The notes under the pieces were generated by a model that was not told the DNA's origin, ran no database searches, and saw only the letters and a program-made list of their open reading frames with translations. Positions 18,806 to 24,640 of a stretch of DNA of 64,000 nucleotides are shown one piece after another (within the stretch, counting starts at the first letter, position 1; each line of letters opens with the position of its first letter). The position numbers and the translations under genes were made by a program. The stretch is from sequence record OP617745.1, one strand, 5' to 3'.

Positions 18806-19704
<899 letters not shown>

Positions 19705-19706
19705 AT

Positions 19707-19913
19707 ATGCATGTAAAAATTAACCCAGAAAAGAACTTTTATAATGAAGTATTCGGTTCTGAAGATTTAGTACGTCATTTTCCTGAATTAGAAACAACTG
19801 GCGTCGAAGTTTATTATGATGGTGACTTGTATCATATCATTAAAGATGGTAAACTAGCTGGAGATTGCTGTTTCTTTGATGAAGAAGAAATGGAACATCT
19901 TACCATTCTATAA
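19707..19913 (+). CDS. hypothetical protein
   Basis: Tiled ORF. Confidence 0.7.
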   Translation: MHVKINPEKNFYNEVFGSEDLVRHFPELETTGVEVYYDGDLYHIIKDGKLAGDCCFFDEEEMEHLTIL

Positions 19914-19920
19914 ATAAAAA

Positions 19921-20410
19921 ATGGAGGCGACTGTATTCAGTACTGAATCAATTGATCGTTGCGTAATCAGATTCAGTTAGCGTAGTATTAGCTGGGACGC
20001 GTACTTGTGAGCCGCAACCACAACGTACTTAAAATCCAACGCGTGGAGGGTAAGCATTCTGTACTGAATAGCAGAAGGGCTACAAAAACTTATACTTCAA
20101 AAAGGTTCGGGAAGTATTCGTAATAAACCGTTTAATCGTCTTATCAGTGCTATGAACAACCAATATATTTGTGGTGGATATTATTGGACTCAAGTAGATG
20201 ATGTTATCTTTGTACGCTTTCTAACCAAAAGGTCAGATAATAAAAATGTAAGAAAATTTCAGTACTGATAGCTGGAACCTTACTATAGTAAAAAGACCTG
20301 ATATGACTCGCTTAGGTCTTTAAATTATATAATGCGAGGGACGCTACGCCTTAGTTTAGGGCTAAATCGTAAGGATTGAGTACTAAACCGCCTTGAGAGT
20401 CCCAAGGCAA
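19921..20410 (+). ncRNA. large structured non-coding RNA candidate (~490 nt)
   Basis: No ORF >=60 aa, raised GC, nested helices TATTCAGTAC/GTACTGAATA, TATCAGTGCT/AGTACTGATA, AAGACCTGA/TTAGGTCTT, GCCTTG/CAAGGC. Confidence 0.6.
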
Positions 20411-20559
20411 CTTTTAATTTAAACAAATTTGTACAAAACACAAAAAGGTGATATAATGATTCTATCTGAAGAAGATTGGGGTGTTTATCCTAAAGACGAA
20501 TTTGATGGATTTTAATAAAAAATCTTGAACAAAAACAAAATAATGTGATATAATATTAG

Positions 20560-20687
20560 TACTGAATGAGGATAGGTGCAGTTGGTGAGATACCGCATGA
20601 GAAATCATAGACACCGTAGAAAGCGAAGGGCTTGGTGAGCGACGGCAATAGACAAGCATAGTAGAGGCTTGAAGAACTCATTTAGTA
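20560..20687 (+). ncRNA. structured RNA, copy 1 of duplicated motif
   Basis: Starts just after TTGAAC..TATAAT promoter; 11-bp closing stem TACTGAATGAG/CTCATTTAGTA; homologous to 21287..21386. Confidence 0.7.
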
Positions 20688-20792
20688 TTTTTTAATTTAA
20701 AGAATTATGCATTAGTTGTTTTAAATCAGTAAAACACCGAAGATGTAAGTACTATGTAGTATGTCAAAATCAAATATAATAAGAGTATACAT

Positions 20793-21266
20793 ATGAAAGT
20801 CAAATTGGGAAGTACTATCAAAGCAGGTTATACTGTTTCAGTTACAACGTGGGAAAATGATGGAGATAATTATCAAACAAATGACATTGTAGGTTTATCT
20901 AAAGAAGATGCCAAAATGTTTATTGATACTTTACCCATTTTTAAATCCGTTAATAGTAAAAAGAAAGGTCTTGGAAACAAAGAACTTAATATTAACCAGT
21001 ACTTGGGTAAGTTCGAAGACCTAATCAATAACAATATTATCACAGTGTCATTTGCTGAAAAATATTTTGGTTATATTAACCCAAATAGTGATTATGATGA
21101 AGATGAACAACAAGACACGATTATTGAAGCATTGTCTGAAATTCTAGGATATCCAGTTGAATACGATTATGGTTTTATCAGAGTCTTTGAAAAAGTTCAA
21201 GTACTCTTCTTCGATGAAGATACTGTAATTCCTTCAGGTTCGAAAGTAGACACCAGTACTTTATAA
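20793..21266 (+). CDS. hypothetical protein
   Basis: 157-aa ORF, TWENDGDNY motif. Confidence 0.8.
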   Translation: MKVKLGSTIKAGYTVSVTTWENDGDNYQTNDIVGLSKEDAKMFIDTLPIFKSVNSKKKGLGNKELNINQYLGKFEDLINNNIITVSFAEKYFGYINPNSDYDEDEQQDTIIEALSEILGYPVEYDYGFIRVFEKVQVLFFDEDTVIPSGSKVDTSTL

Positions 21267-21286
21267 CATATAAAATACAGAACAAA

Positions 21287-21386
21287 TACTGAATGAGGAT
21301 AGGTCATTGTGACCGGATGAAGTGAAAGGCTTGGTTAGCGACGGCAAAACCCAACCGTAGTAGAAGCTCTAGGAACTTATTCAGTA
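21287..21386 (+). ncRNA. structured RNA, copy 2 of duplicated motif
   Basis: TACTGAATGAG/CTTATTCAGTA closing stem; shared core GGCTTGGT.AGCGACGGCAA...TAGTAGA.GCT. Confidence 0.7.
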
Positions 21387-21407
21387 CATTTTAATTTAAA
21401 GAATTAT

Positions 21408-21503
21408 GCGGGTGTGGCGGTATTGGTTGTACGCAAAGGTCTTAAAAACCTTCAGAGGGCTTAAAATGCATTCCTCTTGTGAGTTCGAATCTCATCACCC
21501 GTA
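21408..21503 (+). tRNA. tRNA-Leu (UAA)
   Basis: GCGGGTG/CACCCGT acceptor, AAGGT-CTTAAAA-ACCTT anticodon arm, long variable arm, GTTCGAATC T-loop; CCA not encoded. Confidence 0.92.
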
Positions 21504-21523: not shown

Positions 21524-22357
21524 TTGACACAAATGGCAAGAAAAGACATATTAGAACAAAAAGAATTAATATTAGATTTAATTTCCAAGAATACTACAAA
21601 ATCAACAATATGTAAGATTTTAAATTGTAAATCATCAACGTTAGATACGTATTTGAAAAAGATGGGTATTATATATAAAGGAAATCAATCTGGTAAAGGT
21701 AAAAAGAAGGGGATACATTCAAAATATGTCGAAGCTTCTAAATTTCTTAATAAAAATTCATCAATTAGTTCTAATCAATTAAAAAGAAAATTATTGAGAG
21801 AAGGATATTTTGAACACAAATGTTCAAAATGTGGATTAACTGAATGGATGGGTAAACCAATACCAATCGAACTTGAACATAAAGATGGTGATAACACCAA
21901 TAATGAAATAGAAAACTTATGTTTACTGTGTCCAAATTGTCATGCACAAACTGATACATATAAAGGTAAAAATATTAAATCAGTTCGTGAAAAGAAACAT
22001 ATACAAGAAATATTAGATTTTGAAAATTCTTTTGAACGTTCAAAAATAAAAGAACCAATAGAAAATAAAAAGAGAATTCTCAAAATCAAAGAAATTAAAA
22101 AGTGTGAGGAATGCGGTAATGAATATACTGGAAGATCCAAAAAATATTGTTCACATGCTTGTCTTCATTTATCACAAAGAAAATTTAATTTGACATATGA
22201 AGAATTAAAAGATATAATATGGAAATATCCAAGAACAAAAATTGGTGAAATGTATAATGTTTCGGATAATACTGTTCTTAAACGTTGTAGACTGCTAGGT
22301 ATAGAAGTTCCACCATTAGGATATTTTTTAAGTTCAGAATATAAAGATAAAAATTAG
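21524..22357 (+). CDS. free-standing HNH homing endonuclease
   Basis: CSKC...ELEHKDGDNTNNEIENLCLLCPNCH plus C-terminal Zn/HTH modules. Confidence 0.9.
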   Translation: MTQMARKDILEQKELILDLISKNTTKSTICKILNCKSSTLDTYLKKMGIIYKGNQSGKGKKKGIHSKYVEASKFLNKNSSISSNQLKRKLLREGYFEHKCSKCGLTEWMGKPIPIELEHKDGDNTNNEIENLCLLCPNCHAQTDTYKGKNIKSVREKKHIQEILDFENSFERSKIKEPIENKKRILKIKEIKKCEECGNEYTGRSKKYCSHACLHLSQRKFNLTYEELKDIIWKYPRTKIGEMYNVSDNTVLKRCRLLGIEVPPLGYFLSSEYKDKN

Positions 22358-22636: not shown

Positions 22637-22821
22637 TCCACAATCAGACGTATATGGTGTAAGTTACGTCGATGAAATCCAGAACAAGATCTCTGGTACT
22701 CTAGGAAGTGGTGAATGTTAACCTAGACGGGTTTGTTAATTGGACGATAAGCAATTAATACTTGACTAGCAGGTTTAAACTAGAGGTGACTGTCCTTCAC
22801 TATACTGGAAAACCGGGTGGA
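22637..22821 (+). ncRNA. multi-hairpin structured RNA candidate
   Basis: TCCAC/GTGGA closes hairpins GACGTA/TACGTC, CCAGA/TCTGG, CTAGG/CCTAG, TTAATTG/CAATTAA, CTAG/CTAG, GTGA/TCAC. Confidence 0.5.
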
Positions 22822-22830
22822 CTTTTAATT

Positions 22831-22867
22831 AAAAAGTGTTGAACAAAATGTTCAATAATGATATAAT
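22831..22867 (+). promoter_or_regulatory. tRNA-cluster promoter with TTGAAC-N5-GTTCAA palindrome
   Basis: TTGAAC-17-TATAAT with inverted repeat over -35. Confidence 0.8.
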
Positions 22868-22958
22868 AAGTATCAATGTAAGGCATGGAACAATGTTTAC
22901 AGAAGTTACTTAGTAGCCTGTACGCCCCATGTCAAGGTAGCCGAAAGGCAAGTTTAAT

Positions 22959-23008
22959 GGGTGGTTATAAATCTGAATTGACAGAGACTATTAAAACAGT
23001 CACCATCC
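22959..23008 (+). ncRNA. 50-nt three-way-junction motif, copy 2
   Basis: GGGTGGT-TATAAA-TCTG AATTGA CAGA-GACT..AGTC-ACCATCC. Confidence 0.7.
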
Positions 23009-23194
23009 AAATTTTAATTTAATAGTTTAGTATGAATAAAAAACAAATACATAAACATTATGATGAAATTGCAGTGAAGGTTTTTCGTGGTGAATTAGGT
23101 TATAAACCATCTGTTAAATCTAAATATTCAAAATCTTCTTCAATAAAGTTCAATCATAAAATAGAGTTTAAATAATACTGGACAATAATATATA

Positions 23195-23644
23195 ATGAAT
23201 ATCACTAATGTAAAAGATTTTTTAGAATATTTTATTAAGAATACTCGTGCACGTGATGAATTAGAAAAGAATGGATTCATCCAAGGTTACGATTGCACTA
23301 ATTTCTTTTATACTATAGATAAACATGAATATTATGTCGATGCAATTTTAATTGATGATGATGGGTATTGTGTTGGATTTTCGTTCGAAGATATATCACA
23401 AGATGCACCAATAAACTTTTATGCATTATATTATAATAAAAAAGATAATATTTTGAAATTAGGATTTACCAGTGACACGGATGAAGATGTTGTATTCAAT
23501 TGTAACACATGGTTGGAACATGATTCATTCTTTCAAAGTACATTAATTCATAACTTTATGACAACAGATTTAGAGTACTGGAAAAATTGCATAGAATTAC
23601 TTAATGTAATTTATAATGAACAAATCAAACAAAAATGGCAATAA
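23195..23644 (+). CDS. FQxS(T/L) C-terminal-motif family protein
   Basis: WLEHDSFFQSTLIHNF.TTDLEYWKNC. Confidence 0.8.
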   Translation: MNITNVKDFLEYFIKNTRARDELEKNGFIQGYDCTNFFYTIDKHEYYVDAILIDDDGYCVGFSFEDISQDAPINFYALYYNKKDNILKLGFTSDTDEDVVFNCNTWLEHDSFFQSTLIHNFMTTDLEYWKNCIELLNVIYNEQIKQKWQ

Positions 23645-23700
23645 TCACAGAACGGTTCAGCATTTGGTAGTATGTTTGACTGAATAAAGCATAAACGTGT

Positions 23701-23737
23701 AAAAAAGTGTTGAACAAAAAGTTCAGTACTATATAAT
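23701..23737 (+). promoter_or_regulatory. tRNA-cluster promoter
   Basis: TTGAAC AAAAA GTTCAG..TATAAT. Confidence 0.75.
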
Positions 23738-23748
23738 TGACTTACTAC

Positions 23749-23822
23749 GTCCCCTTAGTTCAGTTGGATAGAACAACTGCCTTCTAAGCAGTAGGTCACT
23801 GGTTCGAGTCCAGTAGGGGATA
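23749..23822 (+). tRNA. tRNA-Arg (UCU)
   Basis: GTCCCCT/AGGGGAT, ACTGC-CTTCTAA-GCAGT, GGTTCGAGTCC. Confidence 0.92.
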
Positions 23823-23869
23823 TACCATACAATATGGGAATAGTTAGAAGATATTCCCAATTTTAATTT

Positions 23870-23907
23870 AAAAAAGTGTTGAACAAAAAGTTCAATAATG
23901 ATATAAT
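23870..23907 (+). promoter_or_regulatory. tRNA-cluster promoter
   Basis: TTGAAC AAAAA GTTCAA..TGATATAAT. Confidence 0.8.
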
Positions 23908-23970
23908 GGTATTATAAAAGGTTGTAATACTTAATATTAACTTTTAAGAAGATAATTAGTATTATACACA

Positions 23971-24062
<92 letters not shown>

Positions 24063-24074
24063 TAAAATTCAATT

Positions 24075-24112
24075 AAAAAAGTGTTGAACAAAAAGTTCAA
24101 TGCTGATATAAT
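24075..24112 (+). promoter_or_regulatory. tRNA-cluster promoter
   Basis: TTGAAC AAAAA GTTCAA..TGATATAAT. Confidence 0.8.
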
Positions 24113-24120
24113 AAAAGAAT

Positions 24121-24211
<91 letters not shown>

Positions 24212-24219
24212 GATTTTAT

Positions 24220-24269
24220 GGATAGTTATAAAGTTGAATTAACAGCGACACTTAAAATTGTCACTATCC
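24220..24269 (+). ncRNA. 50-nt three-way-junction motif, copy 3
   Basis: GGATAGT-TATAAA-GTTG AATTAA CAGC-GACA..TGTC-ACTATCC. Confidence 0.7.
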
Positions 24270-24284
24270 AAATTTTAATTTAAA

Positions 24285-24319
24285 TAGTACTTGACAAAAA
24301 TGTTCAGTACTGATACAAT
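24285..24319 (+). promoter_or_regulatory. promoter of intron-containing tRNA
   Basis: TTGACA-17-TACAAT with GTTCAG half site. Confidence 0.7.
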
Positions 24320-24329
24320 AAAGAATATT

Positions 24330-24640
24330 GGCCCCTTAGCTCACGCTTTGGTTAGAGCAGACGACTCATCGATAAATGGTGACTTTCACAAGTAATTGTG
24401 ATTGAAAAACTGGATGAATTCAGGGAAACCTTAACACATAATGGTGATGGCAATCCTGAGCCAAGCCCAATAAGCGTATTGGGAAGGTGCAGAGACTAGG
24501 TGGTTCAGCACGATCTTGCTGTGTAATACACCAATAGCGTCCGGCATCCTTATAGGATGATGATATAGTCCTTTCTATAATGAAAATTATAGGTAAAAAG
24601 AATCGTTTGGTACTGTGTTCGACTCACAGAGGGGCCACCA
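24330..24640 (+). tRNA. tRNA-Ile2 (CAU, ileX-like) split by a group I intron; exons 24330..24369 and 24601..24640
   Basis: Joined exons give GGCCCCT/AGGGGCC acceptor, GACGA-CTCAT^AA-TCGTT anticodon arm, T arm and ACCA, closely like E. coli ileX. Confidence 0.88.
24370..24600 (+). mobile_element. group I intron (IC3-like), 231 nt, no ORF
   Basis: Preceded by U, ends in G; P1 TCAT^CG/TGGTGA with U.G; P3 CTGGATG/CGTCCGG; TCAGGGAAACC, GGCAATCCTGAGCCAAG, GAAGGTGCAGAGACTA, GATATAGTCC cores; P9 CTATAAT-GAAA-ATTATAG. Confidence 0.92.

Follow-up and report, generated by a model that had tools for sequence, protein, structure and literature searches.

Phages encode large structured noncoding RNAs (ncRNAs) such as GOLLD and ROOL, often near transfer RNA (tRNA) genes. 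Bacteriophage T4 carries in its tRNA cluster, together with homing-endonuclease genes, the stable RNAs RNAC and RNAD (species 1 and 2; 139 and 119 nucleotides (nt)), to which no function has been assigned to date (PMC9697503, PMC3014915). In PA5oct, a jumbo phage of A+T-rich composition from the wider clade of the phage considered here, RNA sequencing (RNA-seq) defined ncRNA001–004, which are highly transcribed, G+C-richer stretches of 236–619 nt free of open reading frames (ORFs), and two of them account for 2–5% of the phage reads (PMC7318152). The present study deals with a 64,000-nt stretch of sequence record OP617745.1, hereafter the window, which is 100% identical to Klebsiella jumbo phage KP13-7 of the genus Alcyoneusvirus (jumbo phages with a genome of ~350 kb) and 95–99% identical to RaK2, K64-1, Muenster, and other members of the genus. 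A single base-paired RNA of ~490 nt had been proposed for its ORF-free gap at 19921–20410 (the original prediction), either as a new large ncRNA class or as a distant relative of GOLLD or ROOL. A structured ncRNA without an Rfam family is indeed present, but the supported unit is only ~175 nt long: a conserved structured RNA core at 19917–20092 of the + strand is the real feature of this locus. It represents a family of structured RNAs that is new, has no entry in Rfam release 15, and is common to RaK2-like jumbo phages of Enterobacterales, though it is smaller than the large class that had been envisaged and its helices are mostly unlike those proposed.

The gap is surrounded by small early-type ORFs, with sigma-70 promoters and a scattered tRNA cluster downstream, and the first tRNA gene of the cluster starts at 21408, as anticipated. 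It was also correctly described as ORF-free, the longest ORF on either strand being 38 amino acids (aa), and its G+C content is 39% compared with 30.6% for the window. A cmscan search against Rfam release 15 gave no match in the gap, either at the gathering score over the whole window or at E ≤ 10 over 19400–21500. Elsewhere in the window, the same scan recovered a group I intron and six tRNAs that were also found by ARAGORN. Neither ARAGORN nor the Rfam models placed a tRNA at 19921–20410, or a transfer-messenger RNA (tmRNA), RNase P RNA, or group I intron, three kinds that had not been recognized in the original prediction either.

Homologues of the core in jumbo phage lineages

Homologues of the core were found in Asteriusvirus (PBECO4 and 121Q), in Munch-like Salmonella and Klebsiella phages, in Pectobacterium phage CBB, and in Erwinia phage Hallingskeid. 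Every copy lies in an ORF-free gap no more than 1.5 kb from a tRNA gene and usually within ~400 nt: the Munch and Hallingskeid copies are located 16 and 57 nt 5′ of tRNA-Gly, the 121Q copy ~370 nt 5′ of tRNA-Thr, and the CBB copy ~190 nt after tRNA-Ile, while the core in the window lies 1.3 kb 5′ of tRNA-Leu. The Asteriusvirus copies were reached by a sensitive local comparison with the syntenic PBECO4 region, which matched at two copies of a palindrome, TCAGTACTGA, as well as by blastn and pattern matches. The two palindromes are 121 nt apart from start to start in both Alcyoneusvirus and Asteriusvirus (120 nt in UE-S1), and the sequence between them is strongly diverged between the two genera. 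In PBECO4 and ~37 other Asteriusvirus genomes, the ORF-free gap is preceded by an unrelated small ORF and followed in order by a terminator, a sigma-70 promoter, a tiny ORF, and tRNA-Thr. The upstream gene thus varies between lineages while the RNA remains near a tRNA gene, which we counted as autonomy of the RNA.

The link between this pair of genera and the Munch group was examined using two covariance models, R1 for the core and R2 constructed from Munch, fENko-Kae01, CBB, and Hallingskeid only. R1 detects one copy per genome, matching 19921–20086 in the window with no second copy there. When 55 kb of Salmonella phage Munch were searched, the best R1 match had a weak score of 12.4 bits (E 0.15) and fell within an ORF-free gap of 476 nt whose end lies 16 nt upstream of tRNA-Gly. 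A blastn search from this Munch stretch led to other Munch-like phages, Klebsiella phage fENko-Kae01, CBB (82% identity), and Hallingskeid. R2 gave a single match in the 64-kb window, which is 19917–20092 (25.3 bits, E 6e-5), and also recovered the Asteriusvirus copies with E values of 2e-7 to 7e-3. The family is therefore detected in both directions, R1 finding the Munch group and R2 finding the window and Asteriusvirus, and conservation across the lineages is limited to ~175–190 nt. Pattern scans of IMG/VR returned only RaK2, 121Q, and CBB as relatives, those of GTDB genomes returned none, and one metagenome contig was Asteriusvirus-like. The IMG/VR pattern matches L029 and L030 were rejected as chance matches having neither a model match nor a tRNA. 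E. coli K-12 MG1655 serves as a host for one family member, phage Sharanji.

Small hypothetical coding sequences are annotated over the RNA or its 3′ extension in public records of Munch (− strand, L024:17250–17402), Hallingskeid (+ strand, L026:581–679), and K64-1 (gp260, L005:1737–1853); they are probably annotation artefacts. In CBB, an unannotated tRNA-like stretch (L025:372–462) lies just 5′ of the RNA copy. It gave the only match to the model of YrlA, a Y RNA-like family (RF02553; 31.4 bits, E 4e-4), which is below the gathering score of 69 and is located beside the element and not on it.

Covariation and fold of the core

The pairings of the core were evaluated on three alignments. A1 is a plain MAFFT alignment of 14 Alcyoneusvirus and Asteriusvirus sequences, with pairs taken from RNAalifold and our own pair list; A6 contains Munch, fENko-Kae01, CBB, and Hallingskeid; and A7 is a model alignment of 16 sequences. 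The elements considered are as follows, with the evidence for each.

19934–19940 with 20064–20070, + strand: P1, long-range closing helix, TATTCAG with CTGAATA (covariation)
19941–19949 with 19970–19979, enclosing 19953–19956 with 19966–19969, + strand: arm 1, P1′ enclosing Pa (covariation)
19958–19963 with 20013–20018, + strand: kissing contact between the Pa and Pc loops, GUUGCG with CGCAAC (covariation on A1)
20001–20009 with 20019–20028, + strand: hairpin Pc, with C20024 bulged (G20001–C20028 becomes A–U in OU509535 and phiKp_21)
20035–20038 with 20044–20047, + strand: hairpin Pd (T20035C occurs with A20047G within the genus, U–A becoming C–G)
20053–20062 with 20071–20081, + strand: hairpin P3′, second palindrome (left half) with the GCAGAAGGGCU that comes after it

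On A1, five hairpins, P1′ (enclosing Pa), Pb, Pc, Pd, and P3′, occur at equivalent places with different sequences in the two genera. The pairs are formed in 96% of the cells, compared with 28–41% when the partners are slid, and ten pairs are changed on both sides. The covariation score of 0.240 (0.114 in shuffles) was reached by none of 500 shuffles. RNAalifold gave a consensus of 45 pairs on A6, 13 of which are compensatory. On A7, 86.5% of the cells are paired (30–45% when slid), and 27 pairs are changed on both sides versus 17 ± 2.3 in shuffles, again with 0 of 500 as high. Along the lines of the check that had been suggested, the collection of homologues and the comparison of pair changes with shuffles yielded both homologues in related phages and compensatory pairs in P1, the arms, and the kissing loop. 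Sequence comparison across the lineages establishes the conservation, homology, strand, and secondary and tertiary pairing of the core, and indicates that its fold is a multi-way junction closed by P1 with two arms in kissing contact. The + strand is the folded strand, since many of the G–U pairs would be C–A on the other strand.

P1 is invariant in Alcyoneusvirus and Asteriusvirus and is 97% paired over the 16 sequences. In Munch, fENko-Kae01, and CBB it reads TAACCAG/CTGGTTA, with two compensatory pairs, and in Hallingskeid the palindromes are lost while the complementarity of P1 is retained. This helix bears on the two longest helices of the original prediction, the first of which had joined TATTCAGTAC (located at 19934) to GTACTGAATA (at 20061). 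All complementary words that had been quoted exist in the window, but TATCAGTGCT of the second helix sits at 20142 and not at 20162, an offset of 20 nt. Both helices consist of copies of TCAGTACTGA, and any two copies of a palindromic word are complementary, so that their complementarity by itself is no evidence for RNA structure. Only the first gains separate support, because its TATTCAG/CTGAATA part covaries across lineages.

In arm 1, three of the four Pa pairs have both of their bases changed from Alcyoneusvirus to Asteriusvirus, and a further change in Pa separates Munch from CBB; covariation was also seen in P1′ (CUGG/CCAG versus CUAG/CUAG). The position of Pc is occupied by a hairpin of different sequence in every lineage, and in Pd a further pair, besides the one listed above, has both bases changed between these two genera. 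On A1, which was not fitted to the contact, the kissing pairs are formed in 84 of 84 cells, and two of the six covary (U–A/C–G and G–C/G–U/A–U). The Pa and Pc loops are complementary in every lineage, as GUUGU(A/G)AU/AUUACAAC in Asteriusvirus, GUGA/UCAC in Munch and CBB, and AUGA/UCAU in Hallingskeid. Loop–loop duplex energies compared with shuffled loops are individually weak (p 0.01–0.17), so the case for the kissing contact is made by the covariation and not by these energies.

P3′ may be an alternative conformer, as there is a steric argument against its full co-formation with P1. Its partner strand after the second palindrome follows the pattern GCWGAAGG; both bases of two of its pairs change from Alcyoneusvirus to Asteriusvirus, JP4 changes a U–G to U–A, and the odd T of ATTCTGTAC in the window is compensated within P3′. 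The 3′ tail of the Asteriusvirus copies carries a UUCG/UCCG-capped hairpin with a stem alternating between GUACU/AGUAU and AUGC/GCAU. Asteriusvirus variants change in length by non-multiples of three while this hairpin is kept, which was counted against coding. These copies end in a terminator stem stronger than that of the window, followed by a T-run, in which one G–C to A–U change was found.

Variation within the genus was examined on an alignment of seven Alcyoneusvirus genomes. In OU509535 and phiKp_21, the double changes listed above for Pc and Pd keep both hairpins, but the 5′ GGAGGCG and the GGGAC/ACGCGT stretch at 19994–20002 are altered while their proposed partners (20389–20394, 20399–20403, and 20039–20044) are unchanged. 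These one-sided changes contradict the end-to-end pairing GGAGGCG/CGCCTT and the pseudoknot of GGGAC (19994) with GTCCC. A second GGGAC at 20336 is invariant in Alcyoneusvirus. The ACGCGT/ACGCGT pairing had a mixed outcome: in the R2 alignment it corresponds to a helix that covaries in the Munch group, yet it overlaps and competes with Pd. The region 20050–20410 is almost invariant across the genus, and its rare differences fall in predicted loops or bulges; this placement suggests a fit with the predicted hairpins on very few differences. The block 19853–20049 is sharply divergent in OU509535 and phiKp_21 (the window compared with L002 and L003), and where it covers the end of the upstream ORF, ~40% of the sites differ. 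This divergent block is a product of mosaic recombination with a breakpoint inside the RNA core.

Candidate promoter, 3′ extension, and possible roles of the RNA

A candidate promoter and the features of the genus-specific part were located as listed here.

19909–19916, + strand: TATAAATA, T4 late-promoter-type word immediately 5′ of the RNA
20093–20118, + strand: genus-specific hairpin ATACTTC/GAAGTAT (predicted, weak)
20142–20270, + strand: two more palindrome copies (20143–20152 and 20259–20268), the second helix of the original prediction, surrounding a 38-codon ORF
20152–20268, + strand: the 38-codon ORF, with no Shine–Dalgarno sequence before its ATG
20293–20322, + strand: local hairpin AAAGACCUGA/UUAGGUCUUU, invariant in the genus; only the A-run in front of it has an indel
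20344–20388, + strand: imperfect 13-bp hairpin, with variable sites 20363 and 20379 in loop and bulge
20390–20416 (stem 20390–20408), + strand: terminator-like hairpin GCCUUG/CAAGGC, then a weak U-run
20430–20457, + strand: sigma-70-type early promoter with extended −10, restarting transcription after the gap

The word TATAAATA at 19909–19916 is, as we infer from its position and distribution, a candidate promoter of the RNA's own. Only three copies occur in the 64 kb (19909, 43477, and 48439) versus 16.6 ± 3.9 expected. Each has + strand orientation and sits either outside ORFs or at the end of a gene, a distribution that a functional promoter word of the late type would be expected to show. 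A/T words of the AATAAAT/ATAAATA type are also found 5′ of the RNA in phiKp_21, PBECO4, Turkey5, and Hallingskeid. No terminator lies between the upstream ORFs and the RNA, so read-through from early promoters is expected.

The region 20093–20410 has no detectable counterpart outside Alcyoneusvirus, and we take it to extend the RNA, or its transcript, at the 3′ end in this genus only. The loop of the 20093–20118 hairpin contains all three of the variable sites 20103, 20107, and 20111, and G20149 is A in most relatives, so that G–U alternates with A–U. The local hairpins at 20293–20322 and 20390–20408 (GCCTTG/CAAGGC) had been correctly recognized as real. A PeSL, known from T4-type phages, is a stem-loop followed directly by a sigma-70 early promoter with variable flanking genes; such a cassette is found at the 3′ end of the gap only, and the same terminator–promoter arrangement, with a TTGACA −35 and different genes on both sides, follows the Asteriusvirus copies. 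This cassette does not account for the conserved core. Just after the early promoter, a tiny ORF (20457–20515) has a conserved start, MILSEEDWG... versus MVQEENWGF in PBECO4 (L010:4622–4651, − strand), and an unrelated small ORF replaces it in some Asteriusvirus genomes. Two further relationships were tried and rejected: the similarity of 20121–20292 to the core, as a decayed tandem duplicate, is confined to the palindrome (z 2.6, 11-nt match), and homology of the 3′ part in the window to the Asteriusvirus 3′ tail is not significant (z 0.0–0.4).

We somewhat favor the reading that the core is a stand-alone, compactly folded ncRNA produced with the tRNA-region transcripts. The RNA would be transcribed along with these transcripts and possibly also from the late-type TATAAATA promoter. 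Its 3′ end would be set by the downstream terminator in Alcyoneusvirus and Asteriusvirus, and by 5′ processing of the tRNA in Munch, fENko-Kae01, and Hallingskeid. RNase P cleaves at the 5′ end of tRNAs, and since a tRNA gene follows at 16–57 nt in the latter three phages, this cleavage would define the end of the RNA. The RNA might then act as a folded, stable molecule that binds a protein or small-molecule partner, and would be a gene product in its own right rather than a regulator of one neighboring gene; the transcript ends, stability, action in trans, and partner are all features that we infer. A further step, which we regard as less likely than not, is that the core is the founding member of a new RNA class with a specific role in the tRNA economy of jumbo phages, and not a passive 3′ untranslated region. 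Possible roles of this kind would be the sensing or decoying of a tRNA-targeting host factor, or a ligand- or protein-responsive switch for tRNA operons.

Several points weigh against this stand-alone RNA. The scores that join the two groups are modest (12–36 bits), A7 was fitted to the structure of the model and favors that structure, and a large part of the covariation goes back to a small number of deep divergences (two groups, five lineages) rather than to many independent events. The 3′ part of the core (P0, P3′, and the ACGCGU option) differs between the groups with no single agreed pairing. Single-sequence folding energies are no better than those of shuffled sequences: the z-score of the minimum free energy (MFE) is −1.9 for the whole region on the + strand and −0.9 for the core, and it is −3.4 for the region on the − strand, where the palindromes count equally. 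No TATAAATA-like word lies 5′ of the 121Q and CBB copies, and our literature search found no transcriptome of Alcyoneusvirus, Asteriusvirus, a Munch-like phage, or CBB. Finally, the location of the RNA, immediately 5′ of tRNA genes or of a terminator, would be equally compatible with a cis-acting leader.

Such a leader, aptamer- or attenuator-like and sensing a ligand, a protein, or tRNA, would use a P1/P3′ switch to control transcription or processing into the tRNA genes; we regard it as doubtful and place it second among the readings. In all cases a tRNA gene or a terminator-plus-promoter block follows closely 3′ of the RNA, and purine and lysine riboswitches likewise combine a closing helix, a multi-way junction, and a loop–loop contact, an architecture shared by several riboswitch aptamers. 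P3′ carries compensatory changes of its own, and in several Asteriusvirus sequences the folds forced to contain P1 or P1′+P3′ differ by only 1–3 kcal/mol. However, no riboswitch or T-box family was matched in the Rfam scans, and in Munch, fENko-Kae01, and Hallingskeid the tRNA comes directly, leaving neither a terminator nor a start codon to control. The second palindrome, which is needed for P3′, is absent from the Munch group, and the distance to the terminator ranges from ~110 to ~320 nt with unrelated intervening sequence.

It is improbable that the gap acts at the DNA level, as an operator-like cluster of TCAGTACTGA palindromes bound by a phage or host protein regulating early promoters, with the folding incidental. 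Example sites of the word are as follows.

2088, 3528, 11622, 19937, 20259, 24304, 39716, and 60216: palindrome TCAGTACTGA

No other word of the window is as over-represented as this palindrome: when one mismatch is tolerated, CAGTACTGA has 174 matches versus 10.7 expected, and its core CAGTACTG has 39 exact copies versus 5.5 expected, a 7-fold excess over a third-order Markov expectation. Four to five copies fall within 620 nt at the gap, where ~0.5 would be expected from the window average, and several sigma-70-type promoters have a copy overlapping their spacer or start site. Enrichment is seen in Munch (19 versus 2.6) and PBECO4 (12 versus 1.1) as well, though not in PA5oct or T4, and the word looks like a clade-wide nucleic-acid signal. 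Its center bears a possible resemblance to the E. coli SlmA-binding site. Most copies are nevertheless inside genes, in all three frames, and operators leave unexplained the compensatory hairpin changes between the palindromes, the G–U pattern, the kissing-loop covariation, and the UUCG/UCCG-capped hairpin. Moreover, Hallingskeid has lost the palindrome, as have Munch and CBB at the second of the two sites, and all of them keep the complementarity of P1.

A small or decayed coding sequence, either the 38-codon ORF, which RefSeq annotates as gp260 in K64-1, or a DNA-binding tail remnant in a 65-codon frame (20071–20265) ending in ICGGYYW, a motif similar to the C-terminal tails of phage homing endonucleases, is very improbable, because the 38-codon ORF lacks a Shine–Dalgarno sequence, Pfam matches are at noise only, tblastn finds nothing outside the genus, a database of 5.8 billion proteins holds no relative, so that the match to a small protein named as refuting the original prediction was not obtained, and the coding explanation covers only the genus-specific part and not the conserved core.

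The tRNA region and comparison with known RNAs

The region downstream of the stand-alone RNA that we favor contains further elements. Two copies of a second structured element, 79% identical to each other, lie at 20558–20700 and 21285–21407. The element is 125–145 nt long and G+C-richer, with GTACTGAATGAG and CTCATTCAGTAC closing it, and it gave no match in Rfam. The first copy begins at +1 of a promoter at 20525–20554, and the second is directly 5′ of tRNA-Leu. RaK2 has one copy, while the two copies in the window flank a 157-aa ORF, as if this ORF had been inserted by recombination between them. Between tRNA-Leu and tRNA-Gly, an HNH endonuclease gene (21524–22357) is found in the window, Muenster, and Munch, and a 324-nt ORF takes its place in K64-1, RaK2, RCIP0023, and phiKp_21; the HNH gene behaves like a mobile gene within the tRNA cluster. 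Over 22815–24319, five to six cassettes of ~53 nt, each with an A/T-rich stretch, a TTGAAC −35, and an extended −10, precede individual tRNA genes, and the tRNAs hence appear to have separate, near-identical promoters. A tRNA gene with a CAU anticodon at 24325–24640, missed by ARAGORN, has its anticodon loop split by a group I intron (RF00028, 104 bits, 24344–24592) and its own sigma-70-type promoter (24267–24319) with the palindrome in the spacer.

A search of the literature gave no paper describing the RNA family and nothing relevant on the palindrome, and the core was compared with RNAs of other kinds. Membership in GOLLD or ROOL, even distant, is contradicted, as no Rfam family matches any lineage at E ≤ 10; the GOLLD (RF01998) and ROOL (RF03087) models matched neither the gap nor the PBECO4, CBB, Hallingskeid, and fENko-Kae01 copies. 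The conserved unit of ~175 nt is also several-fold smaller than these large RNAs. The likeness to purine and lysine riboswitch aptamers, which extends to the closing helix, the multi-way junction, and the covarying loop–loop contact, is an architectural resemblance only. Unlike riboswitches, the family has no expression platform common to its lineages, and a tRNA is what lies downstream in three of them. T-box and other riboswitch models gave no match at E ≤ 10 in any lineage scanned. An 8-nt likeness of the Munch-group 3′ strand UAGGGUGG to a T-box motif was set aside, as it is not conserved in Alcyoneusvirus and Asteriusvirus and is accompanied by no T-box model match. R1, run unfiltered, had no match in the 18 kb that hold ncRNA001 and ncRNA002 of PA5oct. 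The PA5oct ncRNAs differ from the core in that they are not beside tRNA genes in the stretch examined, and neither structure nor conservation beyond one species has been reported for them.

The family spans five lineages infecting Klebsiella, Escherichia, Salmonella, Pectobacterium, and Erwinia, and offers a defined fold with testable tertiary contacts. Jumbo phages with many capsule depolymerases are studied for the therapy of Klebsiella and E. coli infections, and a conserved, unannotated RNA gene matters for their annotation. T4 RNAC and RNAD have been known for long, structured RNAs of phage tRNA regions are still without an assigned function, and the new family provides a tractable case. 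RNAC and RNAD are its closest analogues in kind: the core, like them, is encoded in or beside a phage tRNA gene cluster, and they are late RNAs, while the copy in the window is preceded by the T4-late-type word TATAAATA. Homology to them was rejected, since an unfiltered R1 search of T4 69000–74500 gave a best score of 9.2 bits inside gene e.6 and nothing at rnaC/rnaD. The expression and stability of the T4 RNAs have been demonstrated, whereas the core RNA is here predicted from sequence. The T4 RNAs are located 3′ of the last tRNA, whereas the core RNA lies 5′ of a tRNA or a terminator.

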